A stretch of DNA of 64,000 nucleotides, taken from Macrostomum hystrix (lineage: Eukaryota; Animalia; Platyhelminthes). Below the pieces are notes generated by a model that saw nothing but the letters and a program-made list of their open reading frames with translations, did not search any database and was not told where the DNA came from. The DNA is taken from contig CATNEN010000020.1 in NCBI GenBank assembly GCA_950097015.1, positions 1 through 64,000 on the forward strand, in the 5' to 3' direction. This document shows, piece after piece, positions 354-37,900 of the stretch. A program made the translations under genes and the position numbers. Each line of letters opens with the position of its first letter. Positions within the stretch are counted from its first letter, which is position 1.

Positions 354-3300
354 ATGTTTCCCTTACTCACAATACTCACCGCTGTCCTCCTGTACCTCAT
401 GAACTCACTTCATTCCTCACACCACCGAGAAGACGCACAAGAACTCACCGACCAGGACCTCCTCGCAGCCATCAGAGACGACCGAGTGGAGCCCGTTCAG
501 CGATTCATTAACAGCGGCGGCAGCCTCGATACCTTCATCGCCTATGCTGACTCATTTTTTACTCCAGCAATGCTCGCTTGCCGTTTCGGAAGACATGAAA
601 TTCTCGTGAGACTCATCCGAGCCATTGCAGATGTAGATAAGCAGAACTGGAGAGGGGCGACAGCATTGTGGATGGCATCACAATATGGTCACCACCGACT
701 GGTGAAATCACTCATCAAAGCACGAGCCGACGTCAATCTTCAAACAAATAATGGCGCCTCACCTCTCCACATTGCATCACTAAATGGCCATAACGACGTC
801 GTCCACTCACTCATCAAAGCACGAGCCGACGTCAATCTTCAAACAATTACTGGCGCCTCACCTCTCTACATTGCATCATATCAAGGCCATAACGACGTCG
901 TCCACTCACTCATCAATGCACGAGCCGACGTCAATCTTCAAGAAAATACTGGCTACTCACCTCTCCACATTGCATCACAAAATGGCCATAACGACGTCGT
1001 CCACTCACTCATCAAAGCACGAGCCGACGTCAATCTTCAAATAAATACTGGCGCCTCACCTCTCTACATTGCATCACAGCAAGGCCATAACGACGTCGTC
1101 CACTCACTCATCAATGCACGAGCCGACGTCAATCTTCAAAAAAATACTGGCGACTCACCTCTCCACATTGCATCACTAAATGGCCATAACGACGTCGTCC
1201 ACTCACTCATCAAAGCACGAGCCGACGTCAATCTTCAAACAATTACTGGCGCCTCACCTCTCTACATTGCATCATATCAAGGCCATAACGACGTCGTCCA
1301 CTCACTCATCAAAGCACGAGCCGACGTCAATCTTCAAACAAATACTGGCGAGTCACCTCTCTACATTGCATCACTAAATGGCCATAACGACGTCGTCCAC
1401 TCACTCATCAAAGCACGAGCCGACGTCAATCTTCAACAGAAAGTCTATGGCGCCTCACCTCTCTACATTGCATCCCGCAATGGCCATAACGACGTCGTCC
1501 ACTCACTCATCAAAGCACGAGCCGACGTCAATCTTCAAACAAATAATGGCGCCTCACCTCTCTACATTGCATCACAGCAAGGCCATAACGACGTCGTCCA
1601 CTCACTCATCAAAGCACGAGCCGACGTCAATCTTCAAGATAATACTGGCGCCTCACCTCTCTACATTGCATCACAAAATGGCCACCTCAGTGTTGTCGAG
1701 TCACTCATGAAGGTCGTTCATAGCCCCGACTTGCTGACAGCTGCTCTGCGAATCGCCACGGAAATCGGCCATGACCAAGTGGTTGACCTGCTGAGCCGTG
1801 GATCCTCCGCGCCATTGCCTGAGGAGAAGCAAAACAGGTAGGAGCTCCTGTTTCTTGTAAATGTCACCTGAACAATCATAGATACTTCGGATTCTCTGAG
1901 TATTCAGACTCCAAATCTGATTGCTGAACTTCGGAACTGATTGTTTTTGTGTTATTGTGTTATTGTTTTCTTGTTTTATTGTTATTGTTAAGGTTCTCAC
2001 GAATACCTGCTGCTTTTACTTCGCATTGTTAAGAGCTGGCGAATTTATAGCCAAAAGCCTCGAATTCACAGCAATGACCACTAGGAGTAAAATAACGGAA
2101 AACTACGATAATAGTTAATAAATATGTCTGCTTGCGCCGAAGATTATACCACAAGGATAGGAAATTGTTAGTGGCGCTGGTGTGCCGCCGGCCCTAGTTA
2201 GCAGTGGCGCCCTCAGAAGGCGAAAGACAGAACTTCCTAGTAGTTCTTATTGTCAATGCCTGTTTAGCCACAGACAGCAGACTCCACTTCAAAATTCTCA
2301 GTTTATGATTCGGATTTGATTGTGGAGGATTCAATATTACAGGCTTGGGATTCAATATTACAGGTTTGAGATTCAGTATTACAGGTTTGAGATTCAGTAT
2401 TACAGGTTTGAGATTCAATATTACAGGTTTGAGATTTAATATTACAGGTTTGGGATTTAATATTACAGGTTTGGAATTCAATATTACAGGTTTGGGATTC
2501 AATATTACAGGTTTGGGGTTCAGTATTACAGGCTCGGGATTTAATATTACAGGTTTGGGGTTCAGTATTACAGGTTTGGGATTCAATATTACAGGTTTGA
2601 GATTCAATATTACAGGTTTGGGGTTCAGTATTACAGGCTCGGGATTTAATATTACAGGTTTGGGGTTCAGTATTACAGGTTTGGGATTCAATATTACAGG
2701 TTTGGGATTAAATGTTACAGGTTCGGGATTCAATATTACAGGCTCGGGATTTAATATTACAGGTTTGGGGTTCAGTATTACAGGTTTGGAATTCAATATT
2801 ACAGGTTTGGGATTAAATGTTACAGGTTTGAGATTCAATGTTACAGAAATATTGGATTTAGATTTCTTAAAATTGACACATTCTGGCTGTTTAGTGTATT
2901 ATTCGCAAAAAATCTGCCTACTAATCTTTTAAAATTCATATATTTTTCTCATTCCTCGTTTCAGCTGTAGTTTTAGTTTCAATCCCAGTGAAACTCAGCA
3001 CTGCCGCCTCCTCTCACCCTTCAGAGCCTCCCAGCCTCACTGAAACTCAGCACTGCCGCCTCCTCTCACCCTTCAGAGCCTCCCAGACTCACTGAACCTC
3101 AGCACTGCCGCCTCCTCTCACCCTTCAGAGCCTCCCAGCCTCACTGAACCTCAGCACTGCCGCCTCCTCTCACCCTTCAGAGCCGCTCCCAGCGACGCAG
3201 AGCTGAGCCAGCAGCTGCACTCCAAGCTCTCTCAGTCGGGATTCGTGGACTCCAGAGCCGCCTTGCAGATCGCTGTGGCTGACGTCTTGCAGGATGTCCT

Positions 3301-6300
3301 CAGGAAGAGATGGAACAATGACGACTGGTTCGCTGTGGGCAGCTTCTCTGAGGCCTGGGGCAACAGCCTGGTCTCTCTGGATGGCAGAACTGACATCGAC
3401 TCTGACATCGATGTTATTGAGCTGATTCCAGGAAGGCCGATTCACCCGAGAGATGTGTGCGAGTGCGACCGAGTGGAGGCTGCTCAGACAGTGGAGCTCA
3501 GCAATGGCCACATCCTGAGCTCCGGATTCGGTGAGAATTTCCTGTCAGAGACTGTCGGGATGGCTGGGACAAGAATTGAACATGAGTTTGGCTTGCTCAT
3601 CTTCTTTGGCTTTCTAAAGCAAACAACAAACAAGGAAAGCAAACAAATGTTCAGTCCAGGTTTGAAATGCAGAGCCAGAGCAAGAAATTTCCCAGCAAAA
3701 ATGTAAACCCTGATTTTTCTTTCGGCACGCTTCCTCTGGGAACCAAACAGAGGCTTAGCGCTCCTCGCTCAGTGTACTTAGTGAATAGTGATGCTATATT
3801 ATGTATTCATGGTACATACTGATCTTTATAAGCCAAAATCTAATATCCTATATTCGCTATAAACTGTTAGTTAACTAGCAATGTAATCCCATCTTCGGGA
3901 GCCCAGACGATTCAATCAAGTTTCTCTCTGTTTCTCAGGCTCGCAATACTTTCACAGTCACAGGTGTGTAAAAGTAAAGTTTTTGAGGTGACCGCCCCAG
4001 TCCATGGACTGAACCGTTGTACACAGCTTTTGGAAGCGTCGTACAAACGCTACGGCTGGGCCATTGCAAATTTCGGTTATTTCTATTATATTATATTCTG
4101 TTGCCGCTTTTACAGAATTAGTTTTCTGTGATTCTGAAATTATGCCAATCAATGTCCATTGATTTTCAACAATATTCCGAACAGCCAATTCTAACTAGCC
4201 ATATAGTAGCTAGTTATCCAGTAGACAGGAAAATTATCCTAATTTATGTGGGCGGGAAAACCACCGCCGCAGGAAAATCCCATCGAATTTCCAGTCCAGA
4301 TTTGAATCTCGGCCTGAGGGAACGATGCTTGTCCAAGAGCTGGAATCATAACCTCGTATTTATTCAGCTCAGCCAGCTGAAGGTTACAGTAGAAATTTGA
4401 GGGGGCTGGTGACTCCCCAGTACAAAGACTGAAGAGCTGTATACAGTACTCACAAAATACTCATTAGAAACTAAAGAAGCAAGGAAGAATTGAAAATAAT
4501 CGTGCACGTGCTGCCCTCCGTAGGGGGCAAAAGTTTCTAGTCTGCACTAAAATTTCATATAAATCGCAGCTACAAACCATCTTTGCACAATTTTTTTATC
4601 TTATCGAGAAATAGTTCTGTGTCTATTAACTTGAAATCGGATGGCATTTTGCATATTTCTTGCATTTCCTTTTACTCCAGCCTCCAACCCAGCCTACACT
4701 CAAAATGGCTCCGCCATGAGACCGGCTGTGGATTACGTCACCGCCCGCCGCCTCTGCCGCTACCCTCCCATCGCGCCGCTGCAACCACCAAGAGTCTCCA
4801 ACTCCAACATCCTCCAGTCCGTGCTGCAGTCGCTCGAGCGAGACCTCACCGCTGCCTCATCGCCCTGTCACGTGGTGCACGCAGCCCCTCCTGGAATGGG
4901 CGGCCAGCAGCTCCGAGTGAGCAGCAGCTTCCTGGAGAGGCGACTGCTGCAGAGTCTCAGCACTCTGCAAGGCCAGCTGTTCGTCACACTCAAGTGGCTG
5001 CTGAAGAAGAAAATCTCAAACGTCGGCTTCAAGTCCTATCACGCAAAGACCGTCACGTTCCGAATGCTGGAGGAGACACCTGCTGAGCAGTGGAAGCCGG
5101 AGAATCTCGTGAGACTCACGACACGCTCGCTGCAGATTTTGCTTGACGGTGTGGAGAGCGGCTGCAGATCAGACACACCTGACGGTCGGATCCTGGAGCA
5201 CTTCTTCCTGAGCGATGCCGCTGTGTACCTGAAGGGCTTGAAGTCGCCCACATCAGCTGAGAGAGTGAGCGAAGCGTTGAATCGGGCAGCCGGCGCATTG
5301 AGTGACGCCATGGCTGAGCTGCCTCAGCTGCTGCTGCAGTTCGAGGACAGTCTGCGACCCGTCACCGACTCGGGCCGATTCCACTTCCACCCGTTCCTCA
5401 TCCTGCCAGTTCTTTGGCTCACACCTGTACCAGAAGCCAAGACATGCGAGTTCCACGAGATCTACGACATCGTGAGAGAGTCGGTGCTTCGTCTGTCCGA
5501 TGGAGACCGCAGCCCGCAGTCCCGAGAGAGTCTCGCAGAGCTGATCAACAAACTGCCAGACTGCGCCCGATCAGCGCGAGAGTCTCTCAGAGCGCTGGCC
5601 TGCCTGAAGTTCGGCGACAGACGCACTGCTGAAAAAGTTGTGAGCGACTGCGGGCCGTTCAGTGCGAGCAGAGGCATCGATTGGGGAGATGAGAGGTCGG
5701 CGAGAGAGGCCACTGCGGACTTTGTGTGGCAGCACCTGAAGAGCCGAGACTCCGCCTGGAAATTCTGCTTGGAGTTTGATGAGCGACCGAAGCTGCCGAT
5801 TCAGCACAAAGTCTTTGCCGACTGCTTTCCGCTGCAGATGATAAACTACAGCACATACTTCTACCTGAACTTTGACGCTCTGCTGCGGGCTCTTTGCAAT
5901 GAGCTGACAGTAGCAGGAGACCGGAGCGATCAGGACTGGATCCGGGATGTGGCTCAGAGGGAGGATGCGGATGAGCAGGAGCTGCTGGTGGCTGCGGCGA
6001 TCTGCGGAGATCTGGAGCTGCTGCGGCGGCTGCGCAGAAGAATCACTCACGAGCTGTGCCAGCTGCCAGGGTGGCTGCAGCAGAAGATTGAGAGGCTGAG
6101 CAGTCAAGGTGAAGATCGCCAAGACCAAGGTGAAGATCGCCAAGACCAAGGTGAAGATCGCCAAGACCAAGGTGAAGATCGCCAAGACCAAGGTGAACAT
6201 CGCCAAGACCAAGGTGAAGATCGCCAAAACCAAGAGATTCAAGAGAGATTGATATTGAGATTGAGATCAGCACAGGCAAAAAGGCTGCAGAGAAAGCGAA

Positions 6301-6314
6301 AATCGGTCGAGTAA
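354..6314 (+). CDS. Ankyrin-repeat + Mab-21/cGAS-like nucleotidyltransferase (cGLR) fusion protein, 3 exons, about 1155 aa
   Basis: Exons 354-1837 (AG|GTAGGA, phase 2), 3181-3530 (pyrimidine tract+CAG acceptor; G|GTGAGA, phase 1) and 4681-6314 (TTTACTCCAG acceptor) join in frame: 3468 nt = 1156 codons. An in-frame TAG at 276 supports ATG 354. Exon 1 has about 14 ANK repeats. Exon 2 has VGSFSE...SDIDV (GS and DxD motifs). Exon 3 has AVDYV (candidate third acidic residue), [20 protein letters not shown] and ILEHFFL, typical of the Mab-21 C-lobe. Confidence 0.85.
753..1690 (+). repeat. Coding tandem array of near-identical 99-bp ankyrin units (one of 102 bp)
   Basis: Units start GGC at 753, 852, 951, 1050, 1149, 1248, 1347, 1449, 1548 and 1647; consensus [33 protein letters not shown]. 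Confidence 0.95.
2331..2845. repeat. 21-bp minisatellite (CAATATTACAGGTTTGGGATT) in intron 1
   Basis: About 24 copies; explains the spurious GFNITGL / NPKPVIL ORFs. Confidence 0.95.
2989..3184 (+). repeat. 52-bp tandem repeat x4 duplicating the exon-2 splice acceptor
   Basis: TGAA starts at 2989, 3041, 3093 and 3145; each unit contains CCTCCTCTCACCCTTCAG|AGCC. Confidence 0.9.
3988..4040 (+). repeat. Short dispersed repeat (GGTGACCCCCAGTCCATGGACTGAACAGCTG...TTTGGAAG); other copies at about 4407-4447, 25654-25785 and 26904-27100
   Basis: Four similar copies, all on +. The 26.9-kb copy has an internal duplication of about 37 bp. Confidence 0.65.
6105..6230 (+). repeat. Coding 21-bp repeat x6 (QGEDRQD) in the cGLR C-terminal tail
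   Basis: CAAGGTGAAGATCGCCAAGAC tandem, in frame. Confidence 0.9.
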
Positions 6315-6454
6315 AGCACCAAATATAATCATTTTACAATCAAGTTATCATTTAGTATCAAAAGATCATTGGACCATCAAGTCGTACACTCACGAGCTGT
6401 GCCGGCTGCCAGGGTGGCTGCAGCAGAAGATTCGGAGGCTGAGATGTCAAACTA

Positions 6455-9400
6455 AAACTTCAGGCCTGTGACAATCGAACATCAGGCCAGTGACTGTCGA
6501 ACTTCAGGCTCGTGCTTTGCGAGTGAGTCGTACCTCCTCAGGCCAGTGACTATCGAACATCAGGCAAGTGACTATCGAACTTCAGGCCAGTGACTATCGA
6601 ACTTCAGGCCAGTGACTATCGAACTTCAGGCCAGTGACTATTGAACTGAAGGCCAGTGACTATCAAACTTCAGGCCAGTGACCATCGAACTTCAGGCCAG
6701 TGACTATCGAACATCAGGCAAGTGACTATCGAACTTCAGGCCAGTGACTATCGAACTTCAGGCCAGTGACTATCGAACTTCAGGCCAGTGACTGTCGAAC
6801 TTCAGGCCAGTGACCATCGAACTTTAGGCAAATGCTTTATGAGTGAGTTCTACCTCCTCAGGCCAGTGACTGTCGTACTTCAGGCTCGTGCTTTGTGAGT
6901 GAGTCCGACCTCCTCAGGCCAGTGACAATCGAACTTCAGGCTAGTGACTATAAAACTTCAGGCCAGTGACCATCGAACTTCAGGCCAGTGACTATTGAAC
7001 TTCAGGCCAGTGACTATCAAACTTCAGGCTCGTGCTTGGTGAGTGAGTTCTACCTCCTCAGGCCAGTGACTGTCGTACTTCAGGCCAGTGACCATCAAAC
7101 TTCAGGTCAGTTACTATCCAACTTCAGGCTCGTGCTTTGTGAGTGAGTCCTACCTCCTCAGGCCAGTGACAATCGAACTTGAGGCTAGTGACTATCGAAC
7201 TTCAGGCCAGTGACTATCGAACTTCAGGCCAGTGACCATCAAACTTCAGGCCAGTGACTATCGAACTTCAGGCCAGTGACCATCAAACTTCAGGCCAGTG
7301 ACTATTGAACTGAAGGCCAGTGACAATCAAACTTCAGGCCAGTGACCATCGAACTTCAGGCCAGTGACTATCGAACTTCAGGCCAGTGACTTTCGAACTT
7401 CAGGCCAGTGACCATCAAACTTCAGGCCAGTGACCATCGAACTTTAGGCACATGCTTTATGAGTGAGTCCGACCTCCTCAGGCCAGTGACAATCGAACTT
7501 CAGGCTAGTGACTATCAAACTTCAGGCCAGTGACCATCGAACTTCAGGCTAGTGACTATCAAACTTCAGGCCAGTGACTATTGAACTTCAGGCCAGTGAC
7601 CATCAAACTTCAGGTCAGTTACTATCCAACTTCAGGCTCGTGCTTTGTGAGTGAGTCCTACCTCCTCAGGCCAGTGACAATCGAACTTGAGGCTAGTGAC
7701 TATCGAACTTCAGGCCAGTGACTATCGAACTTCAGGCCAGTGACCATCAAACTTCAGGCCAGTGACTATCGAACTTCAGGCCAGTGACTATTGAACTGAA
7801 GGCCAGTGACTATCAAACTTCAGGCCAGTGACCATCGAACTTCAGGCCAGTGACTATCGAACTTCAGGCCAGTGACTTTCGAACTTCAGGCCAGTGACCA
7901 TCAAACTTCAGGCCAGTGACCATCGAACTTTAGGCACATGCTTTATGAGTGAGTCCGACCTCCTCAGGCCAGTGACAATCGAACTTCAGGCTAGTGACTA
8001 TCAAACTTCAGGCCAGTGACCATCGAACTTCAGGCTAGTGACTATCAAACTTCAGGCCAGTGACTATTGAACTTCAGGCCAGTGACCATCAAACTTCAGG
8101 TCAGTTACTATCCAACTTCAGGCTCGTGCTTTGTGAGTGAGTCCTACCTCCTCAGGCCAGTGACAATCGAACTTGAGGCTAGTGACTATCGAACTTCAGG
8201 CCAGTGACTATCGAACTTCAGGCCAGTGACCATCAAACTTCAGGCCAGTGACTATCGAACTTCAGGCCAGTGACCATCAAACTTCAGGCCAGTGACTATT
8301 GAACTGAAGACCAGTGACTATCAAACTTCAGGCCAGTGACCATCGAACTTCAGGCCAGTGACTATCGAACTTCAGGCAAGTGACTATCGAACTTCAGGCC
8401 AGTGACTATCGAACTTCAGGCTCGTGCTTTTGAGTGAGTCGCACCTCCTCAGGCCAGTGACCATCGAACTTCAGGCTCGTGCTTTTGAGTGAGTCGCACC
8501 TCCTCAGGCCAGTGACCTTCGAACTTCAGGCCAGTGACTATCGAACTTCAGGCCAGTGACTATCGAACTTCAGGCCAGTGACTATCGAACTTCAGGCCAG
8601 TGACCATCGAACTTTAGGCACATGCTTTATGAGTGAGTCCGACCTCCTCAGGCCAGTGACAATCGAACTTCAGGCTAGTGACTATCAAACTTCAGGCCAG
8701 TGACCATCGAACTTCAGGCTAGTGACTATTGAACTTCAGGCCAGTGACTATTGAACTTCAGGTCAGTTACTATTGAACTTCAGGCCAGTGACCATCAAAC
8801 TTCAGGTCAGTTACTATCCAACTTCAGGCTCGTGCTTTGTGAGTGAGTCCTACCTCCTCAGGCCAGTGACAATCGAACTTGAGGCTAGTGACTATCGAAC
8901 TTCAGGCCAGTGACTATCGAACTTCAGGCCAGTGACTATCGAACTTCAGGCCAGTGACCATCAAACTTCAGGCCAGTGACTATCGAACTTCAGGCCAGTG
9001 ACCATCAAACTTCAGGCCAGTGACTATTGAACTGAAGGCCAGTGACTATCAAACTTCAGGCCAGTGACCATCGAACTTCAGGCCAGTGACTATCGAACTT
9101 CAGGCAAGTGACTATCGAACTTCAGGCCAGTGACTATCGAACTTCAGCCTCGTGCTTTTGAGTGAGTCGCACCTCCTCAGGCCAGTGACCATCGAACTTC
9201 AGGCTCGTGCTTTTGAGTGAGTCGCACCTCCTCAGGCCAGTGACCTTCGAACTTCAGGCCAGTGACTATCGAACTTCAGGCCAGTGACTATCGAACTTCA
9301 GGCCAGTGACTATCGAACTTCAGGCCAGTGACTATCAAACTTCAGGCCAGTGACTATCGAACTTCAGGCCAGTGACTATCGAACTTCAGGCAAGTGACTA

Positions 9401-12400
9401 TCGAACTTCAGGCCAGTGACTATCGAACGTCAGGCCAGTGACTATCGAACTTCAGGCCAGTGACCATCAAACTTCAGGCCAGTTACCATCCAACTTTAGG
9501 CTCGTGCTTGGTGAGTGAGTCCTGCATCCTCAAGCCAGTGACCATCGAACTTCAGGCTCGTGCTTTATGAGTGAGTCGCAATTCCTCAGGCCAGTGACCT
9601 TCGAACTTCAGGCCAGTGACCATCGAACTTCAGGCCAGTGACTGTCGTACTTCAGGCTCGTGCTTTGTGAGTGAGTCGCACCTGCTCAGGCCAGTGACCA
9701 TCGAACTTCAGGCCAGTGACTGTCGAACTTCAGGCCAGTGACTATTGAACTGAAGGCCAGTGACTATCAAACTTCAGGCCAGTGACCATCGAACTTCAGG
9801 CCAGTGACTATCGAACTTCAGGCAAGTGACTATCGAACTTCAGGCCAGTGACTATCGAACTTCAGCCTCGTGCTTTTGAGTGAGTCGCACCTCCTCAGGC
9901 CAGTGACCATCGAACTTCAGGCTCGTGCTTTTGAGTGAGTCGCACCTCCTCAGGCCAGTGACCTTCGAACTTCAGGCCAGTGACTATCGAACTTCAGGCC
10001 AGTGACTATCGAACTTCAGGCCAGTGACTATCGAACTTCAGGCCAGTGACTATCAAACTTCAGGCCAGTGACTATCGAACTTCAGGCCAGTGACTATCGA
10101 ACTTCAGGCAAGTGACTATCGAACTTCAGGCCAGTGACTATCGAACGTCAGGCCAGTGACTATCGAACTTCAGGCCAGTGACCATCAAACTTCAGGCCAG
10201 TTACCATCCAACTTTAGGCTCGTGCTTGGTGAGTGAGTCCTGCATCCTCAAGCCAGTGACCATCGAACTTCAGGCTCGTGCTTTATGAGTGAGTCGCAAT
10301 TCCTCAGGCCAGTGACCTTCGAACTTCAGGCCAGTGACCATCGAACTTCAGGCCAGTGACTGTCGTACTTCAGGCTCGTGCTTTGTGAGTGAGTCGCACC
10401 TGCTCAGGCCAGTGACCATCGAACTTCAGGCCAGTGACTGTCGAACTTCAGGCCAGTGACTGTCGAACTTCAGGTCAGTTACTATCCAACTTCAGGCTCG
10501 TGCTTTGTGAGTGAGTCCTACCTCCTCAGGCCAGTGACAATCGAACTTGAGGCTAGTGACTATCGAACTTCAGGCCAGTGACTATCGAACTTCAGGCCAG
10601 TGACTATCGAACTTCAGGCCAGTGACCATCAAACTTCAGGCCAGTGACTATCGAACTTCAGGCCAGTGACCATCAAACTTCAGGCCAGTGACTATTGAAC
10701 TGAAGGCCAGTGACTATCAAACTTCAGGCCAGTGACCATCGAACTTCAGGCCAGTGACTATCGAACTTCAGGCAAGTGACTATCGAACTTCAGGCAAGTG
10801 ACTATCGAACTTCAGGCCAGTGACTATCGAACTTCAGCCTCGTGCTTTTGAGTGAGTCGCACCTCCTCAGGCCAGTGACCATCGAACTTCAGGCTCGTGC
10901 TTTTGAGTGAGTCGCACCTCCTCAGGCCAGTGACCTTCGAACTTCAGGCCAGTGACTATCGAACTTCAGGCCAGTGACTATCGAACTTCAGGCCAGTGAC
11001 TATCGAACTTCAGGCCAGTGACTATCAAACTTCAGGCCAGTGACTATCGAACTTCAGGCCAGTGACTATCGAACTTCAGGCAAGTGACTATCGAACTTCA
11101 GGCCAGTGACTATCGAACTTCAGGCCAGTGACTATCGAACTTCAGGCCAGTGACCATCAAACTTCAGGCCAGTTACCATCCAACTTTAGGCTCGTGCTTG
11201 GTGAGTGAGTCCTGCATCCTCAAGCCAGTGACCATCGAACTTCAGGCTCGTGCTTTATGAGTGAGTCGCAATTCCTCAGGCCAGTGACCTTCGAACTTCA
11301 GGCCAGTGACCATCGAACTTCAGGCCAGTGACTGTCGTACTTCAGGCTCGTGCTTTGTGAGTGAGTCGCACCTGCTCAGGCCAGTGACCATCGAACTTCA
11401 GGCCAGTGACTGTCGAACTTCAGGCCAGTGACTGTCGAACTTCAGGCCAGTGACCATCGAACTTCAGGCCAGTGACTGTCGTACTTCAGGCTCGTGCTTT
11501 GTGAGTGAGTCGCACCTGCTCAGGCCAGTGACCATCGAACTTCAGGCCAGTGACTATCGAACTTCAGGCCAGTGACTATCGAACTTCAGGCCAGTGACCA
11601 TCAAACTTCAGGTCAGTTACTATCCAACTTTAGGCTCGTGCTTTGTGAGTGAGTCCTACCTCCTCAGGCCAGTGACAATCGAACTTCAGGCTAGTGACTA
11701 TCAAACTTCAGGCCAGTGAATATCGAACTTCAGGCTAGTGACTATTAAACTTCAGGCCAGTGACCATCGAACTTTAGGCCAGTGACCATCAAACTTCAGG
11801 CCAGTTACCATCCAACTTTAGGCACGTGCTTTGTGAGTGAGTCCTACCTCCTCAGGCCAGTGACTGTCGTACTTCAGGCTCGTGCTTTGTGAGTGAGTCC
11901 GACCTCCTCAGGCCAGTGACCTTCGAACTTCAGGCCAGTGACTATCGAACTTCAGGCCAGTGACTGTCGAACTTCAGGCCAGTGACCATCAAACTTCAGG
12001 CCAGTTGCCATCCAACTTTAGGCTCGTGCTTGGTGAGTGAATCCGACCTCCTCATGCCAGTGACCATCGAACTTCAGGCTCGTGCTTTTGAGTGAGTCGC
12101 ACCTCCTCAGGCCAGTGACCTTCGAACTTCAGGCCAGTGACTATCGAACTTCAGGCCAGTGACTATCGAACTTCAGGCAAGTGACTATCGAAGTTCAGGC
12201 CAGTGACTATCGAACTTCAGGCCAGTGACTATCGAACTTCAGGCCAGTGACTATTGAACTGAAGGCCAGTGACTATCAAACTTCAGGCCAGTGACCATCG
12301 AACTTCAGGCTCGTGCTTTTGAGTGAGTCGCACCTCCTCAGGCCAGTGACTATCGAACTTCAGGCCAGTGACTATCGAACTTCAGGCCAGTGACTATCGA

Positions 12401-15400
12401 ACTTCAGGCCAGTGACTGTCGAACTTCAGGCCAGTGACCATCGAACTTTAGGCACATGCTTTATGAGTGAGTTCTACCTCCTCAGGCCAGTGACTGTCGT
12501 ACTTCAGGCTCGTGCTTTGTGAGTGAGTCCGACCTCCTCAGGCCAGTGACAATCGAACTTGAGGCTAGTGACTATCGAACTTCAGGCCAGTGACTATCGA
12601 ACTTCAGGCCAGTGACTATCGAACTTCAGGCCAGTGGCCATCAAACTTCAGGTCAGTTACTATCCAACTTCAGGCTCGTGCTTTGTGAGTGAGTCCTACC
12701 TCCTCAGGCCAGTGACAATCGAACTTGAGGCTAGTGACTATCGAACTTCAGGCCAGTGACTATCGAACTTCAGGCCAGTGACTATCGAACTTCAGGCCAG
12801 TGACCATCAAACTTCAGGCCAGTGACTATCGAACTTCAGGCCAGTGACCATCAAACTTCAGGCCAGTGACTATTGAACTGAAGACCAGTGACTATCAAAC
12901 TTCAGGCCAGTGACCATCGAACTTCAGGCCAGTGACTATCGAACTTCAGGCAAGTGACTATCGAACTTCAGGCCAGTGACTATCGAACTTCAGGCTCGTG
13001 CTTTTGAGTGAGTCGCACCTCCTCAGGCCAGTGACCATCGAACTTCAGGCTCGTGCTTTTGAGTGAGTCGCACCTCCTCAGGCCAGTGACCTTCGAACTT
13101 CAGGCCAGTGACTATCGAACTTCAGGCCAGTGACTATCGAACTTCAGGCCAGTGACTATCGAACTTCAGGCCAGTGACCATCGAACTTTAGGCACATGCT
13201 TTATGAGTGAGTCCGACCTCCTCAGGCCAGTGACAATCGAACTTCAGGCTAGTGACTATCAAACTTCAGGCCAGTGACCATCGAACTTCAGGCTAGTGAC
13301 TATTGAACTTCAGGCCAGTGACTATTGAACTTCAGGTCAGTTACTATTGAACTTCAGGCCAGTGACCATCAAACTTCAGGTCAGTTACTATCCAACTTCA
13401 GGCTCGTGCTTTGTGAGTGAGTCCTACCTCCTCAGGCCAGTGACAATCGAACTTGAGGCTAGTGACTATCGAACTTCAGGCCAGTGACTATCGAACTTCA
13501 GGCCAGTGACTATCGAACTTCAGGCCAGTGACCATCAAACTTCAGGCCAGTGACTATCGAACTTCAGGCCAGTGACCGTCAAACTTCAGGCCAGTGACTA
13601 TTGAACTGAAGGCCAGTGACTATCAAACTTCAGGCCAGTGACCATCGAACCTCAGGCCAGTCACTATCGAACTTCAGGCAAGTGACTATCGAACTTCAGG
13701 CCAGTGACTATCGAACTTCAGCCTCGTGCTTTTGAGTGAGTCGCACCTCCTCAGGCCAGTGACTATCGAACTTCAGGCCAGTGACTATCGAACTTCAGCC
13801 TCGTGCTTTTGAGTGAGTCGCACCTCCTCAGGCCAGTGACCTTCGAACTTCAGGCCAGTGACTATCGAACTTCAGGCCAGTGACTATCGAACTTCAGGCC
13901 AGTGACTATCGAACTTCAGGCCAGTGACTATCAAACTTCAGGCCAGTGACTATCGAACTTCAGGCCAGTGACTATCGAACTTCAGGCAAGTGACTATCGA
14001 ACTTCAGGCCAGTGACTATCGAACTTCAGGCCAGTGACTATCGAACTTCAGGCCAGTGACCATCAAACTTCAGGCCAGTTACCATCCAACTTTAGGCTCG
14101 TGCTTGGTGAGTGAGTCCTGCATCCTCAGGCCAGTGACCATCGAACTTCAGGCTCGTGCTTTATGAGTGAGTCGCAATTCCTCAGGCCAGTGACCTTCGA
14201 ACTTCAGGCCAGTGACTATCGAACTTCAGGCCAGTGACTATCGAACTTCAGGCCAGTGACTATCGAACTTCAGGCCAGTGACTATCAAACTTCAGGCCAG
14301 TGACTATCGAACTTCAGGCTAGTGACTATCAAACTTCAGGCCAGTGAATATCGAACTTCAGGCTAGTGACTATTAAACTTCAGGCCAGTGACCATCGAAC
14401 TTTAGGCCAGTGACCATCAAACTTCAGGCCAGTTACCATCCAACTTTAGGCACGTGCTTTGTGAGTGAGTCCTACCTCCTCAGGCCAGTGACTGTCGTAC
14501 TTCAGGCTCGTGCTTTGTGAGTGAGTCCGACCTCCTCAGGCCAGTGACCTTCGAACTTCAGGCCAGTGACTATCGAACTTCAGGCCAGTGACTGTCGAAC
14601 TTCAGGCCAGTGACCATCAAACTTCAGGCCAGTTGCCATCCAACTTTAGGCTCGTGCTTGGTGAGTGAATCCGACCTCCTCATGCCAGTGACCATCGAAC
14701 TTCAGGCTCGTGCTTTTGAGTGAGTCGCACCTCCTCAGGCCAGTGACCTTCGAACTTCAGGCCAGTGACTATCGAACTTCAGGCCAGTGACTATCGAACT
14801 TCAGGCAAGTGACTATCGAAGTTCAGGCCAGTGACTATCGAACTTCAGGCCAGTGACTATCGAACTTCAGGCCAGTGACTATTGAACTGAAGGCCAGTGA
14901 CTATCAAACTTCAGGCCAGTGACCATCGAACTTCAGGCTCGTGCTTTTGAGTGAGTCGCACCTCCTCAGGCCAGTGACTATCGAACTTCAGGCCAGTGAC
15001 TATCGAACTTCAGGCCAGTGACTATCGAACTTCAGGCCAGTGACTGTCGAACTTCAGGCCAGTGACCATCGAACTTTAGGCACATGCTTTATGAGTGAGT
15101 TCTACCTCCTCAGGCCAGTGACTGTCGTACTTCAGGCTCGTGCTTTGTGAGTGAGTCCGACCTCCTCAGGCCAGTGACAATCGAACTTGAGGCTAGTGAC
15201 TATCGAACTTCAGGCCAGTGACTATCGAACTTCAGGCCAGTGACTATCGAACTTCAGGCCAGTGGCCATCAAACTTCAGGTCAGTTACTATCCAACTTCA
15301 GGCTCGTGCTTTGTGAGTGAGTCCTACCTCCTCAGGCCAGTGACAATCGAACTTGAGGCTAGTGACTATCGAACTTCAGGCCAGTGACTATCGAACTTCA

Positions 15401-17290
15401 GGCCAGTGACTATCGAACTTCAGGCCAGTGACCATCAAACTTCAGGCCAGTGACTATCGAACTTCAGGCCAGTGACCATCAAACTTCAGGCCAGTGACTA
15501 TTGAACTGAAGACCAGTGACTATCAAACTTCAGGCCAGTGACCATCGAACTTCAGGCCAGTGACTATCGAACTTCAGGCAAGTGACTATCGAACTTCAGG
15601 CCAGTGACTATCGAACTTCAGGCTCGTGCTTTTGAGTGAGTCGCACCTCCTCAGGCCAGTGACCATCGAACTTCAGGCTCGTGCTTTTGAGTGAGTCGCA
15701 CCTCCTCAGGCCAGTGACCTTCGAACTTCAGGCCAGTGACTATCGAACTTCAGGCCAGTGACTATCGAACTTCAGGCCAGTGACTATCGAACTTCAGGCC
15801 AGTGACCATCGAACTTTAGGCACATGCTTTATGAGTGAGTCCGACCTCCTCAGGCCAGTGACAATCGAACTTCAGGCTAGTGACTATCAAACTTCAGGCC
15901 AGTGACCATCGAACTTCAGGCTAGTGACTATTGAACTTCAGGCCAGTGACTATTGAACTTCAGGTCAGTTACTATTGAACTTCAGGCCAGTGACCATCAA
16001 ACTTCAGGTCAGTTACTATCCAACTTCAGGCTCGTGCTTTGTGAGTGAGTCCTACCTCCTCAGGCCAGTGACAATCGAACTTGAGGCTAGTGACTATCGA
16101 ACTTCAGGCCAGTGACTATCGAACTTCAGGCCAGTGACTATCGAACTTCAGGCCAGTGACCATCAAACTTCAGGCCAGTGACTATCGAACTTCAGGCCAG
16201 TGACCATCAAACTTCAGGCCAGTGACTATCGAACTTCAGGCCAGTGACTATCAAACTTCAGGCCAGTGACCATCGAACCTCAGGCCAGTCACTATCGAAC
16301 TTCAGGCAAGTGACTATCGAACTTCAGGCCAGTGACTATCGAACTTCAGCCTCGTGCTTTTGAGTGAGTCGCACCTCCTCAGGCCAGTGACTATCGAACT
16401 TCAGGCCAGTGACTATCGAACTTCAGCCTCGTGCTTTTGAGTGAGTCGCACCTCCTCAGGCCAGTGACCTTCGAACTTCAGGCCAGTGACTATCGAACTT
16501 CAGGCCAGTGACTATCGAACTTCAGGCCAGTGACTATCGAACTTCAGGCCAGTGACTATCAAACTTCAGGCCAGTGACTATCGAACTTCAGGCCAGTGAC
16601 TATCGAACTTCAGGCAAGTGACTATCGAACTTCAGGCCAGTGACTATCGAACTTCAGGCCAGTGACTATCGAACTTCAGGCCAGTGACCATCAAACTTCA
16701 GGCCAGTTACCATCCAACTTTAGGCTCGTGCTTGGTGAGTGAGTCCTGCATCCTCAGGCCAGTGACCATCGAACTTCAGGCTCGTGCTTTATGAGTGAGT
16801 CGCAATTCCTCAGGCCAGTGACCTTCGAACTTCAGGCCAGTGACCATCGAACTTCAGGCCAGTGACTGTCGTACTTCAGGCTCGTGCTTTGTGAGTGAGT
16901 CGCACCTGCTCAGGCCAGTGACCATCGAACTTCAGGCCAGTGACTGTCGAACTTCAGGCCAGTGACTGTCGAACTTCAGGCCAGTGACCATCGAACTTCA
17001 GGCCAGTGACCATCGAACTTCAGGCTCGTGCTTTTGAGTGAGTCGCACCTCCTCAGGCCAGTGACCATCGAACTTCAGGCCAGTGACTATCGAACTTCAG
17101 GCCAATGACTATCGAACTTCAGGCTCGTGCTTTTTGAGTGAGTCCTACCTCCTCAGGCCAGTGACTGTCGTACTTCAGGCCAGTGACCATCGAACTTCAG
17201 GCCAGTGACCATCGAACTTCAGGCCAGACCCTATTGAACTGAAGGCCAGTGACTATCAAACTTCAGGCCAGTGACCATCGAACTTCAGGC
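6455..17290. repeat. About 10.8-kb composite satellite: 22-bp unit (GAACTTCAGGCCAGTGACTATC) interspersed with 56-bp units carrying a 34-bp insert; higher-order duplications
   Basis: Direct reading. Rare variants recur at offsets of 718 (9571/10289), 972 (10289/11261) and 2628 bp (12004/14632, 12634/15262, 14167/16795). Confidence 0.95.
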
Positions 17291-21184: not shown

Positions 21185-22350
21185 GTGAGGGGAGAAACAG
21201 ACAGAGGTGAGGGGAGAAACAGACAGATATGAGTGGAGAAACAGACAGAGATGAGGGGAGAAACAGACAGAGTTGAGGGGGAGAAACAGACAGAGGTGAG
21301 GGGAGAAACAGACGGAGATAAGGGCAGAAACAGACAGAGATGAGGGGAGAAACAGACAGGTGAGGGGAGATACAGACAGAGGTGAGGGGAGAAACAGACA
21401 GAGATAAGGGCAGAAACAGACAGAGATGAGGGGAGAAACAGACAGGTGAGGGGAGATACAGACAGAGATAAGGGGAGAAACAGACAGAGGTGAGGGGGAG
21501 AAACAGACAGAGGTGAGGGGAGAAACAGACAGAGGTGAGGGAGAAACAGACAGAGGTGAGGGAGAAACAGACAGAGGTGAGGGGAGAAACAGACAGAGGT
21601 GAGGGGAGAAACAGACAGAGGTGAGGGGAGAAACAGACAGAGATGAGGGGAGAAACAGACAGAGGTGAGGGGAGAAACAGACAGAGGTGAGGGGAGAAAC
21701 AGACAGAGATGAGGGGAGAAACAGACAGAGATGAGGGGAGAAACAGACAGAGGTGAGGGGAGAAACAGACAGAGATGAGGGGAGAAACAGACAGAGATGA
21801 GGGGAGAAACAGACAGATGTGAGGGGAGAAACAGACAGAGGTGAGGGGAGAAACAGACAGAGGTGAGGGGAGAAACAGACAGAGGTGAGGGGAGAAACAG
21901 ACAGAGGTGAGGGGAGAAACAGACAGAGATGAGGGGAGAAACAGACAGAGATGAGGGGAGAAACAGACAGAAATGAGGGGAGAAACAGACAGAAATGAGG
22001 GGAGAAACAGACAGAGGTGAGGGGAGAAACAGACAGAGGTGAGGGGAGAAACAGACAGAGATGAGGGGAGAAACAGACAGAGGTGAGGGGAGAAACAGAC
22101 AGAAATGAGGGGAGAAACAGACAGAGGTGAGGGGGAGAAACAGACAGAGGTGAGGGGAGAAACAGACAGAGGTGAGGGGGGAGAAGCAGACAGAGATGAG
22201 GGGGAGAAACAGACAGAGGTGAGGGGAGAAGCAGACAGAGATGAGGGGGAGAAACAGACAGAGGTGAGGGGGAGAAACAGACAGAGGTGAGGGGAGAAAC
22301 AGACAGAGGTGAGGGGGAGAAACAGATAGACGTGAGGACAGAAGCAGACA
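21185..22350. repeat. About 22-bp purine-rich minisatellite (GAGGGGAGAAACAGACAGAGGT), array 1
   Basis: Direct reading; source of the spurious SPHLCLFLP ORFs. Confidence 0.95.
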
Positions 22351-23191
22351 GAAAGCAGTCAGCAAAAAAGCGGGAAAAGGTGAGAAAAAGCCATTAGTTT
22401 TGTTTGAGCACTCGATATTTTTTTGACTTGCAGCCTCAGAAATTATGGGGGGGGCAGGTCACCACCAAAAAGCAGACTGGATTCTGCTTACATCGAGTTG
22501 AGCATGGCCCTGTCTGAGCACAATTAATCAGAGAGGCTGTAACTAATGGGTCAGCCACCCCACTCCCATCCAGAGGCATTGTGCTGAGGGTTTTCCGAGC
22601 ACAATGAGCAGTCACAGCTTCTAAAACTGCGGCCTGGGCAAGAGACACACTAACTGAGTTGGTCTGAGAATGAGTTATGTATTTTATGAGTTTGAGAACA
22701 TTCAAAGCTATTGTTTAGAGAGCCGCCGCTTCCTACCAGAGACCCTGTGCTCTAGGGGCTTCTGAGCAGACTCAGTGCATTCTGTGGCATAGAAGCCGTG
22801 TTGCAAGCCGAGAAAATGCGGCAGAATTTTATTAGCAGACACCGAGTTGAGCACAATTGAGTCACTGAGCTCACTGAAACGAAGGGCCATAGCAACACAA
22901 TGAAGCTGAGACAGAGCTAAACTGGCTGCCTCATTGTATGGGGTGCACTGGCTCTGAGCATGGTCCGCAGTTTCTGTACAATTCGCAGCCTCTCCTGACG
23001 GCCCTCCCCGCTCGGAGGCGAAGGCGCTGAGCCCGTGGCAGCAGCGGCCGCTCGCACGTTGCCTCGCAGACTCCAGCTCTGGCCTGCCTTCTTCGACACA
23101 ATGGGCCTGTGCGACTCACCCACCTCCCTCCGCTGTGATGAGGCTGCAGCTGCAGCTGCAGGTGCATTTCCACCTCAATTTCAGATTGATA

Positions 23192-25335
23192 GATGAGGGG
23201 AGAAACAGACAGAGGTGAGGGGAGAAGCAGACAGAGATGAGGGGAGAAACAGACAGAGATGAGGGGAGAAACAGACAGAGATGAGGGAAGAAACAGACAG
23301 AGGAGAGAGAGAAACAGACAGAGGTGAGGGGAGAAACAGACAGAGGTGAGGGAGAAACAGACAGATGTGAGGGAGAAACAGACAGAGGTGAGGGAGAAAC
23401 AGACAGATATGAGTGGAGAAACAGACAGAGATGAGGGGAGAAACAGACAGAGTTGAGGGGGAGAAACAGACAGAGGTGAGGGGAGAAACAGACGGAGATA
23501 AGGGCAGAAACAGACAGAGATGAGGGGAGAAACAGACAGGTGAGGGGAGATACAGACAGAGGTGAGGGGAGAAACAGACAGAGATAAGGGCAGAAACAGA
23601 CAGAGATGAGGGGAGAAACAGACAGAAATGAGGGGAGAAACAGACAGAGATAAGGGGAGAAACAGACAGAGGTGAGGGGGAGAAACAGACAGAGGTGAGG
23701 GGAGATACAGACAGAGGTGTGGGAGAAGCAGACAGAGGTGAGGGAGAAACAGACAGAGGTGAGGGGAGAAACAGACAGAGGTGAGGGGAGAAACAGACAG
23801 AGGTGAGGGGAGAAACAGACAGAGATGAGGGGAGAAACAGACAGAGGTGAGGGGAGAAACAGACAGAGGTGAGGGGAGAAACAGACAGAGATGAGGGGAG
23901 AAACAGACAGAGATGAGGGGAGAAACAGACAGAGGTGAGGGGAGAAACAGACAGAGATGAGGGGAGAAACAGACAGAGATGAGGGGAGAAACAGACAGAT
24001 GTGAGGGGAGAAACAGACAGAGGTGAGGGGAGAAACAGACAGAGGTGAGGGGAGAAACAGACAGAGGTGAGGGGAGAAACAGACAGAGGTGAGGGGAGAA
24101 ACAGACAGAGATGAGGGGAGAAACAGACAGAGATGAGGGGAGAAACAGACAGAAATGAGGGGAGAAACAGACAGAAATGAGGGGAGAAACAGACAGAGGT
24201 GAGGGGAGAAACAGACAGAGGTGAGGGGAGAAACAGACAGAGATGAGGGGAGAAACAGACAGAGGTGAGGGGAGAAACAGACAGAAATGAGGGGAGAAAC
24301 AGACAGAGGTGAGGGGGAGAAACAGACAGAGGTGAGGGGAGAAACAGACAGAGGTGAGGGGGGAGAAGCAGACAGAGATGAGGGGGAGAAACAGACAGAG
24401 GTGAGGGGAGAAGCAGACAGAGATGAGGGGGAGAAACAGACAGAGGTGAGGGGGAGAAACAGACAGAGGTGAGGGGAGAAACAGACAGAGGTGAGGGGGA
24501 GAAACAGACAGGAATGAGGGGGAGAAACAGACAGAGTTGAGGGGGAGAAACAGACAGAGGTGAGGGGGAGAAGCAGACAGAGATGAGGGGGAGAAACAGA
24601 CAGAGATGAGGGGGAGAAGCAGACAGAGATGAGGGGGAGAAACAGACAGAGGTGAGGGGAGAAGCAGACAGAGATGAGGGGGAGAAACAGACAGAGGTGA
24701 GGGGGAGAAACAGACAGAGGTGAGGGGGAGAAACAGACAGAGTTGAGGGGGAGAAACAGACAGAGGTGAGGGGGAGAAGCAGACAGAGATGAGGGGGAGA
24801 AACAGACAGAGATGAGGGGGAGAAGCAGACAGAGATGAGGGGGAGAAACAGACAGAGATGAGGGGGAGAAACAGACAGAGGTGAGGGGGGAGAAACAGAC
24901 AGAGGTGAGGGGGAGAAACAGACAGAGGTGAGGGGGGAGAAACAGACAGAGGTGAGGGGAGAGACAGACAGAGGTGAGGGAGAAGCAGACAGAGGTGAGG
25001 GCAGAAACAGACAAAGATGGGGGGAGATACAGACAGAGGTGAGGGAGAAACAGACAGAGGTGAGGGAGAAACAGACAGAGGTGAGGGAGAAGCAGACAGA
25101 GGTGAGGGGAGAAACAGACAGAGGTGAGGGGGGAGAAACAGACAGAGGTGAGGGGAGAAGCAGACAGAGGTGGGGGGGGAGAAACAGACAGAGGTGAGGG
25201 GAGAAGCAGACAGAGGTGAGGGAGAAGCAGACAGAGGTGAGGGGAGAAACAGACAAAGATGGGGGGAGATACAGACAGAGGTGAGGGAGAAACAGACAGA
25301 GGTGAGGGAGAAACAGACAGAGGTGAGGGGAGAAA
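23192..25335. repeat. About 22-bp purine-rich minisatellite, array 2
   Basis: Same unit as array 1; shares a variant pattern with it at offset 2180-2182. Confidence 0.95.
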
Positions 25336-34984: not shown

Positions 34985-37900
34985 GAGACAGGGATGAGAC
35001 AGGGGAGGGATAAGACTGGAAAGATGAGACAGGAGATATGAAATAGGGAGGAGAGGAGACAGAGGAGAGATGAGACAGGGGAGAGATGAGACAGGGGAGA
35101 GATGAGACACGGGAGAGATGAGACACGGGAGATATGAGACACGGGAGAGATGAGACACGGGAGAGATGAGACACGGGAGAGATGAGACACGGGAGAGATG
35201 AGACAGGGGAGAGATGAGACAGGGGAGAGCTGAGACAGGGGAGAGATGAGACAGGGGAGAGATGAGACAGGGGAGAGATGAGACACGGGAGAGATGAGAC
35301 AGGGGAGAGATGAGACACGGGAGAGATGAGACACGGGAGAGATGAGACAGGGGAGAGATGAGACAGGGGAGAGATGAGACAGGGGAGAGATGAGACAAAG
35401 GAGAGATTAGACAGGGGAGAGATGAGACAAAGGAGAGATTAGACAGGGGAGAGATGAGACAGGGGAGAGATGAGACACGGGAGAGATGAGACAGGGGAGA
35501 GATGAGACAGGGGAGAGATGAGACACGGGAGAGATGAGACACGGGAGAGATGAGACAGGGGAGAGATGAGACAGGGGAGAGATGAGACACGGGAGAGATG
35601 AGACACGGGAGAGATGAGACAGGGGAGAGATGAGACAAAGGAGAGATTAGACAGGGGAGAGATGAGACAAAGGAGAGATTAGACAGGGGAGAGATGAGAC
35701 AGGGGAGAGATGAGACACGGGAGAGATGAGACAGGGGAGAGATGAGACAGGGGAGAGATGAGACACGGGAGAGATGAGACACGGGAGAGATGAGACAGGG
35801 GAGAGATGAGACACGGGAGAGATGAGACACGGGAGAGATGAGACAGGGGAGAGATGAGACAAAGGAGAGATTAGACAGGGGAGAGATGAGACAAAGGAGA
35901 GATTAGACAGGGGAGAGATGAGACAGGGGAGAGATGAGACACGGGAGAGATGAGACAGGGGAGAGATGAGACAGGGGAGAGATGAGACACGGGAGAGATG
36001 AGACACGGGAGAGATGAGACAGGGGAGAGATAAGACACGGGAGAGATGAGACACGGGAGAGATGAGACAGGGGAGAGATGAGACAGGGGAGAGATGAGAC
36101 AGGGGAGAAATGAGACAGGGGAGAGATGAGACAGGGGAGAGATGAGACACGGGAGAGATGAGACACGGGAGAGATGAGACACGGGAGAGATGAGACAGGG
36201 GAGAAATGAGACAGGGGAGAGATGAGACAGGGGAGAGATGAGACAGGGGAGAGATGAGACAGGGGAGAGATGAGACACGGGAGAGATGAGACACGGGAGA
36301 GATGAGACACGGGAGAGATGAGACACGGGAGAGATGAGACACGGGAGAGATGAGACAGGGGAGAGATGAGACACGGGAGAGATGAGACACGGGAGAGATG
36401 AGACAGGGGAGAGATGAGACAGGGGAGATATGAGACAGGGGAGAGATGAGAAACGTGAGAGCTGAGACAGGGGAGATATGAGACAGGGGAGAGATGAGAC
36501 ACGGGAGAGATGAGACAGGGGAGAGATGAGACAAAGGAGAGATTAGACAGGGGAGAGATGAGACAAAGGAGAGATTAGACAGGGGAGAGATGAGACAGGG
36601 GAGAGATGAGACACGGGAGAGATGAGACAGGGGAGAGATGAGACAGGGGAGAGATGAGACACGGGAGAGATGAGACACGGGAGAGATGAGACAGGGGAGA
36701 GATAAGACACGGGAGAGATGAGACACGGGAGAGATGAGACAGGGGAGAGATGAGACAGGGGAGAGATGAGACAGGGGAGAAATGAGACAGGGGAGAGATG
36801 AGACAGGGGAGAGATGAGACACGGGAGAGATGAGACACGGGAGAGATGAGACACGGGAGAGATGAGACAGGGGAGAGATGAGACAGGGGAGAAATGAGAC
36901 AGGGGAGAGATGAGACAGGGGAGAGATGAGACAGGGGAGAGATGAGACAGGGGAGAGATGAGACACGGGAGAGATGAGACACGGGAGAGATGAGACACGG
37001 GAGAGATGAGACACGGGAGAGATGAGACACGGGAGAGATGAGACAGGGGAGAGATGAGACACGGGAGAGATGAGACACGGGAGAGATGAGACAGGGGAGA
37101 GATGAGACAGGGGAGATATGAGACAGGGGAGAGATGAGAAACGTGAGAGCTGAGACAGGGGAGATATGAGACAGGGGAGAGATGAGACACGGGAGAGACG
37201 AGATAGGGGAGAAATGAGACAGGGGAGAGATGAGACACTGGAGAGATGAGACAGGGGAGAGATGAGACAGGGGAGAGATGAGACAGGGGAGAGATGAGAC
37301 ACGGGAGAGATGAGACACGGGAGAGATGAGACAAGGGAGAGATGAGACAGGGGAGATATGAGACACGGGAGAGATGAGACACGGGAGAGACGAGATAGGG
37401 GAGAGATGAGACAGGGGAGAGATGAGACACGGGAGAGATGAGACACGGGAGAGATGAGACAGGGGAGAGATAAGACACGGGAGAGATGAGACACGGGAGA
37501 GATGAGACAGGGGAGAGATGAGACAGGGGAGAGATGAGACAGGGGAGAAATGAGACAGGGGAGAGATGAGACAGGGGAGAGATGAGACACGGGAGAGATG
37601 AGACACGGGAGAGATGAGACACGGGAGAGATGAGACAGGGGAGAGATGAGACAGGGGAGAAATGAGACAGGGGAGAGATGAGACAGGGGAGAGATGAGAC
37701 AGGGGAGAGATGAGACAGGGGAGAGATGAGACAGGGGAGAGATGAGACACGGGAGAGATGAGACACGGGAGAGATGAGACACGGGAGAGATGAGACACGG
37801 GAGAGATGAGACAGGGGAGAGATGAGACACGGGAGAGATGAGACACGGGAGAGATGAGACAGGGGAGAGATGAGACAGGGGAGATATGAGACAGGGGAGA

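Follow-up and report, generated by a model that had tools for sequence, protein, structure and literature searches.

A gene at positions 354-6314 of a 64,000-nucleotide stretch of Macrostomum hystrix DNA (the window; positions 1 to 64,000 of contig CATNEN010000020.1, forward strand) carries in its first exon a tandem array of ankyrin repeats, whose scaffold is almost identical from unit to unit even at silent sites, and whose differences are gathered at a few codons of the predicted binding face. We propose, with a probability of about 0.6, that this array is the target-binding module of a germline-encoded receptor in which ankyrin repeats are joined to a cGAS-like enzyme (a cGAS-like receptor, or cGLR, type of protein), and that it is shaped by concerted evolution together with diversity of the binding surface. 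An earlier reading made from the sequence alone (hereafter the sequence-only reading) had already suggested a recombination-diversified recognition module. The analysis supports that suggestion: exchange of units is seen between paralogues, and a recognition function can be inferred from the fusion to a cGAS-like domain.

Tandem Repeats Finder reported a 99-bp repeat at 708-1684 (9.8 copies, 90% matches), which lies within an open reading frame (ORF) of 495 amino acids at 354-1841. In the translation of this ORF, units start at 744, 843, 942, 1041, 1140, 1239, 1338, 1437, 1539 and 1638, and the total repeat span is 744-1736. Ten 99-bp units had been claimed by the sequence-only reading; the array is indeed real, but strictly only nine near-identical units are fully homogenized (744-1637). 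Eight of these are 99 bp long, and the unit at 1437-1538, with a QKVYG hairpin, is 102 bp long. The tenth unit (1638-1736) is homogenized in its first half and grades into the C-terminal cap in its second. The nine units are at least 90% identical in DNA and so exceed the threshold for high internal conservation (HIC) as set for the repeats of fungal NLRs, namely more than 85% identity from repeat to repeat across 100 residues or more.

Codons 15-33 of the nine internal units are identical base for base, except for AAA/AAT (K/N) at codon 25 in two units, and the proportion of synonymous sites that differ (pS) is 0.000 in the scaffold of the array. The 18 variable bases are confined to 9 of the 33 codons (1, 2, 3, 5, 9, 12, 13, 14 and 25), and none of 100,000 random placements put 18 sites in so few codons (permutation, P<1e-5). 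Codons 1, 2, 3, 5, 9, 13 and 14, plus 25, are regarded as hypervariable. All but 2 of the 23 minimal steps between units change an amino acid, compared with 26% synonymous steps expected (P=0.04), and many of the variants are separated by 2-3 bases per codon. Thus, the near invariance of the scaffold at silent sites and the excess of non-synonymous differences, both claimed from the sequence alone, hold in the aligned units, as do all of the variants then listed, i.e. the hairpins TNN, TIT, ENT, INT, KNT, TNT, QKVY and DNT, the A, Y, D or E after the G, the H or Y, and the helix-1 ends LN, YQ, QN, QQ and RN. The pair of an LN unit followed by a TIT..YQ unit occurs twice as stated, at units 1-2 and 5-6. 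Adenine-targeted mutagenesis like that of diversity-generating retroelements was considered and ruled out, since every base is represented among the variants and the DNA is that of an animal.

The ankyrin nature of the window protein is clear from Pfam (Ank_2, E=7e-119; Ank, E=1e-84, in 10 stretches); its 33-residue helix-turn-helix units agree with the G-x-(T/S)PLH and GH..V...L...GA.VN consensus of the ankyrin clan, and they align in register with the repeats of designed ankyrin repeat proteins (DARPins) and of ankyrin-1 in solved structures. An AlphaFold model made with a 30-row alignment (pLDDT 93.5, pTM 0.85) forms a continuous stacked solenoid, whose closest fold by Foldseek is 6mol, a 12-repeat DARPin (TM 0.79/0.86), followed by ankyrin-R, 1n11 (TMt 0.90, root-mean-square deviation 2.1). 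In this model, helices occupy unit positions 7-14 and 17-25; therefore, positions 1-5 and 33 fall in the hairpin loop. Positions 13-14 close the inner helix, position 9 lies inside it, and position 25 alone is on the outer helix. A single-sequence AlphaFold model, a beta-solenoid with a pLDDT of 60, contradicted the Pfam and Protein Data Bank (PDB) alignments and was discarded. AlphaFold2 thus returned for the same near-perfect repeat (window 354-1838) a beta-solenoid when given no alignment and a confident ankyrin solenoid when given 30 aligned sequences, and single-sequence models of homogenized repeats call for caution.

Three repeats of DARPin D12 in the alignment vary among themselves at positions 2, 3, 5, 13, 14 and 33, which is the set randomized in DARPins, as reportedly laid out by Binz et al. 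in 2003. Five of these six (2, 3, 5, 13 and 14; not 33) are variable in the window array (hypergeometric P=0.003), so the large overlap with DARPin positions noted by the sequence-only reading is borne out. Two more positions are hypervariable: position 1, where DARPins have a fixed Asp, and position 9, which is the H of TPLH. The randomized positions of DARPins make up the paratope (PMC8683736), and the inner helices and hairpins are the established binding interface of ankyrin repeats (PMC4986451). When mapped on the predicted structure, the variable codons coincide with this canonical binding face: they sit at the tip of the hairpin and on the two residues that close the inner helix, with side-chain orientation assigned by homology.

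The array belongs to an expressed gene of three exons, whose protein begins with a hydrophobic helix and continues through some 13 ankyrin repeats into a divergent cGAS/Mab-21-like domain; this architecture is proven at the level of the family. The RNA-type runs X3 and X5 cover 340-1939, 3140-3539 and 4540-6330 of the window, with the gaps between uncovered, and their contigs join 1823 (plus 8 letters) to 3178 and 3529/30 to 4680/81. Searches were run exon by exon and the frames of the spliced product checked arithmetically: exon 1 ends in phase 2, exon 2 (349-350 nt) leads into the ORF at 3245-3706, and exon 3 into that at 4641-6314. The run contigs may stem from close paralogues (at least 95% alike), and the proof is therefore for the family, not strictly for this copy. 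The nearest relatives of exon 3 are proteins of Macrostomum lignano (67% identity), several of which hold ankyrin repeats and the same C-terminal Mab-21-like part in one annotated chain, with a linker that matches the exon 1/exon 2 junction of the window. A profile built from the C-terminal part of the family matched cGAS alone among solved structures (E=1e-5), and Mab-21_C is present in 9 of 14 family members, so that the C-terminal helical domain is found at the family level, although in the window copy it is weak (E=0.003, below the cut-off). A nucleotidyltransferase core of this superfamily has a GS motif and a [DE]h[DE] ... [DE] catalytic triad; the window copy keeps GS...SDIDV in exon 2 and, in exon 3, an AVD motif that is near-invariant across the family. 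Exon 2 alone gave no credible match in Pfam or PDB.

At least 28 genes in the genome combine such an N-terminus with ankyrin repeats; they lie in tandem clusters on contigs C18 (six copies in 222 kb), C3, C38, C2 and elsewhere, and for each of them an exon-2-like piece lies downstream on the same strand. At least 18 of the genes carry highly homogenized arrays (18 of the 21 arrays that were parsed), with 5-50 internal units. In three subfamilies (A, B and C) with differing scaffolds, each homogenized, the most variable positions are alike (56, 92 and 155 units): 5, 1, 13 and 14, then 2, 3, 9 and 33. In subfamily C, arrays of 37-50 internal units, with ORFs of 1460-1911 amino acids and multi-unit block duplications, are found at C3:10733322-10739000, C3:10746181-10750500 and C2:4859940-4864700; to our knowledge, they rank among the longest homogeneous ankyrin arrays.

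An apparent homogeneity could in principle be created by collapse or polishing of long reads, and the gene does sit only 354 bp from the start of a small, satellite-rich contig of 95 kb. Yet the more than 20 arrays are in frame without exception, the array is matched at 99-100% by contigs of independent runs from 2020 and 2023, among them a contig of 99 bases that shows no difference whatever across units 2-3, and the variation is structured by codon, unlike sequencing error. We consider the chance of such an artifact to be minute.

Within an array, scaffold DNA is 96% identical in any hairpin class, compared with 80-83% between subfamilies, even for units of the same class. The two hairpin classes, a three-residue xNTG and a four-residue EKVxG, are both found in all subfamilies. 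It follows from these patterns that the scaffold evolves in concert, and that the surface types outlive the scaffold on which they are carried. Moreover, homogenization crosses loci: between the window array and its close paralogues the pS of the scaffold is 0.000, compared with 0.04-0.11 in the single-copy 5' region of the same genes.

Unit exchange, insertions and deletions, and differences in array size were compared among paralogues of one genome, the run reads being short Logan contigs that end inside the array. At the DNA level, units 2, 3 and 6 of the window array match units 3, 4 and 5 of the C18:181.9k paralogue without a single difference; this indicates that two units were inserted or deleted between TIT..YQ units which differ at one base. 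Single-unit deletions and duplications distinguish three other paralogues on C18, in which the successive units are of types 27-28-29-30-31-32-33-34-34, 27-28-30-35-35-36-33-34 and 27-28-29-30-37. Since all four combinations of N or I in the hairpin with N or Q at the helix end exist, exchange or recurrent change must also occur within a unit. Some arrays have been nearly swept by one type (a TIT hairpin in 10 of the 11 units of array L026, and one repeated unit type in L025), whereas most retain 5-20 different surface combinations.

In every one of the 18 homogenized arrays, the proportion of differing non-synonymous sites (pN) at the DARPin positions, a set chosen a priori, exceeds array-wide pS by a factor of 2-20; in two old, diverged arrays the ratio of surface pN to array pS is below 1. 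In the window array this ratio is 6.7, or about 14 relative to scaffold-only pS. Thus, dN/dS, which by the sequence-only reading should exceed 1 at the variable sites, does so when set against the synonymous diversity of the whole array, but an excess is not clear when the hypervariable codons are taken by themselves. To capture the youngest differences, minimum spanning trees were drawn over the distinct units and the edges of one base were counted, which gave 32 non-synonymous and 8 synonymous steps. Eighteen of the 32 fall in the seven surface codons, which gives a ratio of non-synonymous to synonymous rates (omega) of about 3.3 (P=0.003) in a test that includes position 1, picked after inspection of the data; for the a-priori set the single-step omega is 2.3, which is borderline (P=0.055), and for the scaffold it is 0.75. 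When distinct amino-acid variants and synonymous codon variants were counted position by position, surface and scaffold gave similar ratios; the counts, dominated by rare scaffold singletons, were uninformative.

These values bear on whether selection for diversity is needed at all. If the units were recent tandem duplicates from a young, neutral amplification, with changes tolerated at exposed residues under relaxed constraint, then a scaffold pS near 0 would simply reflect very recent shared ancestry, and arrays swept by one unit type, such as L026 and L025, would be natural; the synonymous share of the single steps (20%) is also not significantly off the expected 26%. However, the silent rate is a ceiling for neutral change, and a surface-codon pN of 0.29 in the window array stands far above the scaffold pS of 0.00-0.02 and the whole-paralogue pS of 0.04-0.11. 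Many variants lie 2-3 bases apart within a codon, and subfamilies with scaffolds about 20% apart show the same positions and hairpin classes again. For these reasons we regard neutral amplification as quite improbable.

Somewhat less improbable, albeit still unlikely, is a passive origin, in which conversion tracts stop at mismatched patches, or the codons in question are mutational hot spots, so that old differences would persist or accumulate unselected. That pS and pN are both raised inside the hypervariable codons, that the hairpin classes predate the divergence of the scaffolds, and that the scaffold is homogenized even across loci would all fit such an origin. On the other hand, duplication and deletion of whole units are frequent and copy the surface codons too, so arrays free of selection should drift to one unit type, contrary to the 5-20 surface combinations kept by most. 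The patches, moreover, coincide with the structural binding face rather than lying at arbitrary places, and no bias toward a single base or motif is evident among the variants.

The reading that we prefer, a receptor array with selected surface diversity, could work as follows. Unequal crossing-over and gene conversion would homogenize the scaffold and reshuffle the units, and selection would keep or drive the diversity of contact residues, with each array or paralogue offering a different long binding groove. The ligand, probably a protein or another non-nucleic-acid cue from a pathogen or non-self source, would upon binding control the fused nucleotidyltransferase, which would then signal through a nucleotide second messenger.

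Several observations weigh against this reading, the borderline value for the a-priori set and the post hoc inclusion of position 1 among them. By the Nei-Gojobori method, pS within the hypervariable codons is high (0.08-0.5), and pN/pS there is only about 1-1.5, a ratio pushed up by codons that differ at several bases and by the scarcity of silent sites. The assumptions of tree-based tests are violated because the units recombine. Old surface types that are kept diverse on a re-homogenized scaffold fit the data at least as well as ongoing positive selection does; either way, selection for diversity is required, because duplication and loss of whole units would otherwise erase it. The annotated relatives in M. 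lignano mostly have ordinary, diverged ankyrin repeats, and the scaffold sequence found no match in two metagenome scans. As for the enzyme, a genome-wide search with Pfam Mab-21 (PF03281) matched no member of the family and only the canonical Mab21 gene on C24, which marks the enzyme core as divergent. The sole match resembling a STING ligand-binding domain, in a 337-amino-acid open frame at C2:9104529-9104996 on the reverse strand, scored 25.6 bits, below the Pfam cut-off of 27. Finally, should the N-terminal helix prove to be a signal peptide that is cleaved off, the picture of a cytosolic sensor would have to be revised.

The divergence of the enzyme core also leaves some room for a role outside immunity, in which the array would be a scaffold, autoinhibitory or oligomerization module for an endogenous partner, the paralogues would be sub-functionalized, and the cGAS-like domain might be catalytically inactive. 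The failure of the core to match Pfam Mab-21 is in keeping with that, as is the existence of Mab-21 proteins with developmental roles. A conserved endogenous partner, however, predicts conserved contact residues, and the opposite is observed; the window copy retains both GS...SDIDV and the family-wide AVD motif, and, like families of immune receptors, this one has many clustered members and varies in copy number. Little weight is therefore given to a non-immune role.

The closest known parallel is found in fungi, where the ankyrin, TPR and WD repeats of HIC-type NLRs undergo concerted evolution, differ in repeat number, and have a few selected positions on the concave face (2014; PMC4986451). 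That parallel was drawn by the sequence-only reading as well, and the regime of high conservation plus shuffling is the same. As in the fungal NLRs, the flatworm repeats of 33-34 residues are more than 85% identical, evolve in concert, and are exchanged within and between paralogues; repeat numbers differ (here among the paralogues of one genome), and a few positions of the inner helix and hairpin are hypervariable. Unlike in fungi, the host is an animal, the arrays reach 50 internal units, and the array is N-terminal on a cGAS/Mab-21-like nucleotidyltransferase with a hydrophobic helix. Exons 2-3 contain no NACHT or NB-ARC STAND NTPase, and none adjoins the array; the gene is hence not an NLR, though its array works like the repeat domain of a HIC-NLR. 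HIC repeats are rare in metazoans (0.8%; PMC4986451).

DARPins share with the flatworm array a consensus-like invariant framework and diversity at positions 2, 3, 5, 13 and 14 (and at 33 in subfamilies B and C). The flatworm array, in contrast, is natural and germline-encoded, varies in addition at positions 1 and 9 and in hairpin length (3 or 4 residues), and has the framework SPLYIAS...ARADVNLQ instead of TPLHLAA...GADVNA. Variable lymphocyte receptors (VLRs) of lampreys and hagfish, built from leucine-rich repeat cassettes, are likewise solenoid receptors with variable residues on the concave face and with diversity made by recombining repeat cassettes. VLRs, however, are assembled somatically from flanking cassettes by copying that resembles gene conversion, whereas the differences seen in the flatworm are germline ones among paralogues.

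Fusions of ankyrin repeats to cGLRs are themselves known, as a minority architecture, and according to Li et al. (2023; PMC9980059) M. lignano members of the family were included in an enzyme screen of cGLRs. The architecture of these animal fusions is the same as that described here; the homogenization of repeats, the hypervariable surface positions and the shuffling of units seen in the flatworm array do not figure in the text consulted (PMC9980059). Full-text searches of the literature on HIC repeats returned fungal papers only, and nothing tying cGLRs or Macrostomum to the pattern. Thus, while ankyrin-cGLR fusions and the cGLR-like family of Macrostomum are already catalogued, we did not find a description of the HIC regime on an animal cGAS-like receptor.

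A broader proposal can be advanced only tentatively. Macrostomids may possess a germline repertoire made by repeat shuffling: unequal crossing-over and conversion between loci would diversify dozens of ankyrin arrays, and through these arrays the specificities of cGAS-like enzymes for pathogen or allogeneic proteins would keep changing. Such a repertoire would parallel the fungal HIC-NLRs in an animal, and it would be the first case of a cGLR clade in which a hypervariable solenoid that binds proteins determines the ligands. Less likely still is an extension of it, in which the arrays would also change somatically with paralogous arrays as donors. Most characterized cGAS-like receptors sense nucleic acids. 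A rapid, recombination-driven diversification of the binding face would point instead to proteins or other variable ligands, and to an arms race or self/non-self recognition. With this family one could also ask whether animals independently evolved the strategy of fungal NLRs and engineered DARPins, to homogenize the scaffold and diversify the surface, and since Macrostomum is a laboratory model, the family offers a tractable animal system for doing so. For binder design, the natural spectrum of variants may be useful: two further positions vary in it, and the hairpin can be either 3 or 4 residues long. The genome also contains, for example at C1:3.1-24.8 Mb, more than 128 loci similar to exon 2, i.e. 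to the cGAS-like core, of which most lack an ankyrin exon. They amount to a large cGLR-like expansion in a phylum, the flatworms, that has been reported to be mostly without cGLRs.

The remaining parts of the window gene, all on the forward strand, are as follows. The start codon and an N-terminal hydrophobic helix, which may be a membrane anchor or a signal peptide, occupy 354-413; the helix spans amino acids 4-20 in the model and is conserved in all paralogues of subfamilies A-C. An N-terminal cap region with degenerate ankyrin repeats follows at 447-743 (helix pairs 71-89 and 104-122 in the model), and the unit just before the array (645-743) already has the homogenized scaffold in its second half. 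Downstream of the array, the C-terminal cap helices and a linker (1737-1837) end exon 1, with the phase 2 donor AACAG/GTAGGA at 1837/1838 placed by the sequence and by joints in RNA-derived contigs. Intron 1 (1838-3180), uncovered in runs X3 and X5, contains a 21-bp satellite (2327-2846) and a 52-bp repeat (2989-3193, 3.9 copies), and ends at the acceptor CCCTTCAG/AGCC at 3180/3181. Each 52-bp unit carries this acceptor motif and the RNA-derived contigs use the last copy; the earlier copies are therefore potential alternative acceptors. Exon 2 (3181-3529, or possibly to 3530) encodes the start of the cGAS/Mab-21-like nucleotidyltransferase core with SDIDV. Intron 2 (3530-4679, GT..AG) is placed by the joint in run X5, and its cut may shift one base to the right. 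Exon 3 (4680-6314) encodes the rest of the cGAS-like domain with the AVDYV motif and the Mab-21_C region, and a family-specific tail; a 21-bp coding repeat at 6105-6234, near the C-terminus, yields QGEDRQD six times.

Satellite DNA takes up much of the window. Very large arrays lie at 6538-17290 (units of 22 and 55-56 bp), 21185-25335 (22 bp), 34993-38256 (16 bp), 47394-48459 (28 bp) and 48763-56169 (36 bp). In the paralogue at C18:1705-17173 the exon-2-like piece lies about 13.7 kb past the array, compared with 1.3-3 kb in the others, and the intron of this copy may have grown, with satellite DNA as a possible cause. In a contig of run X2, a 22-bp satellite unit, TCAGGCCAGTGACyATCGAACT, directly adjoins an ankyrin unit, with the loose end at 713.

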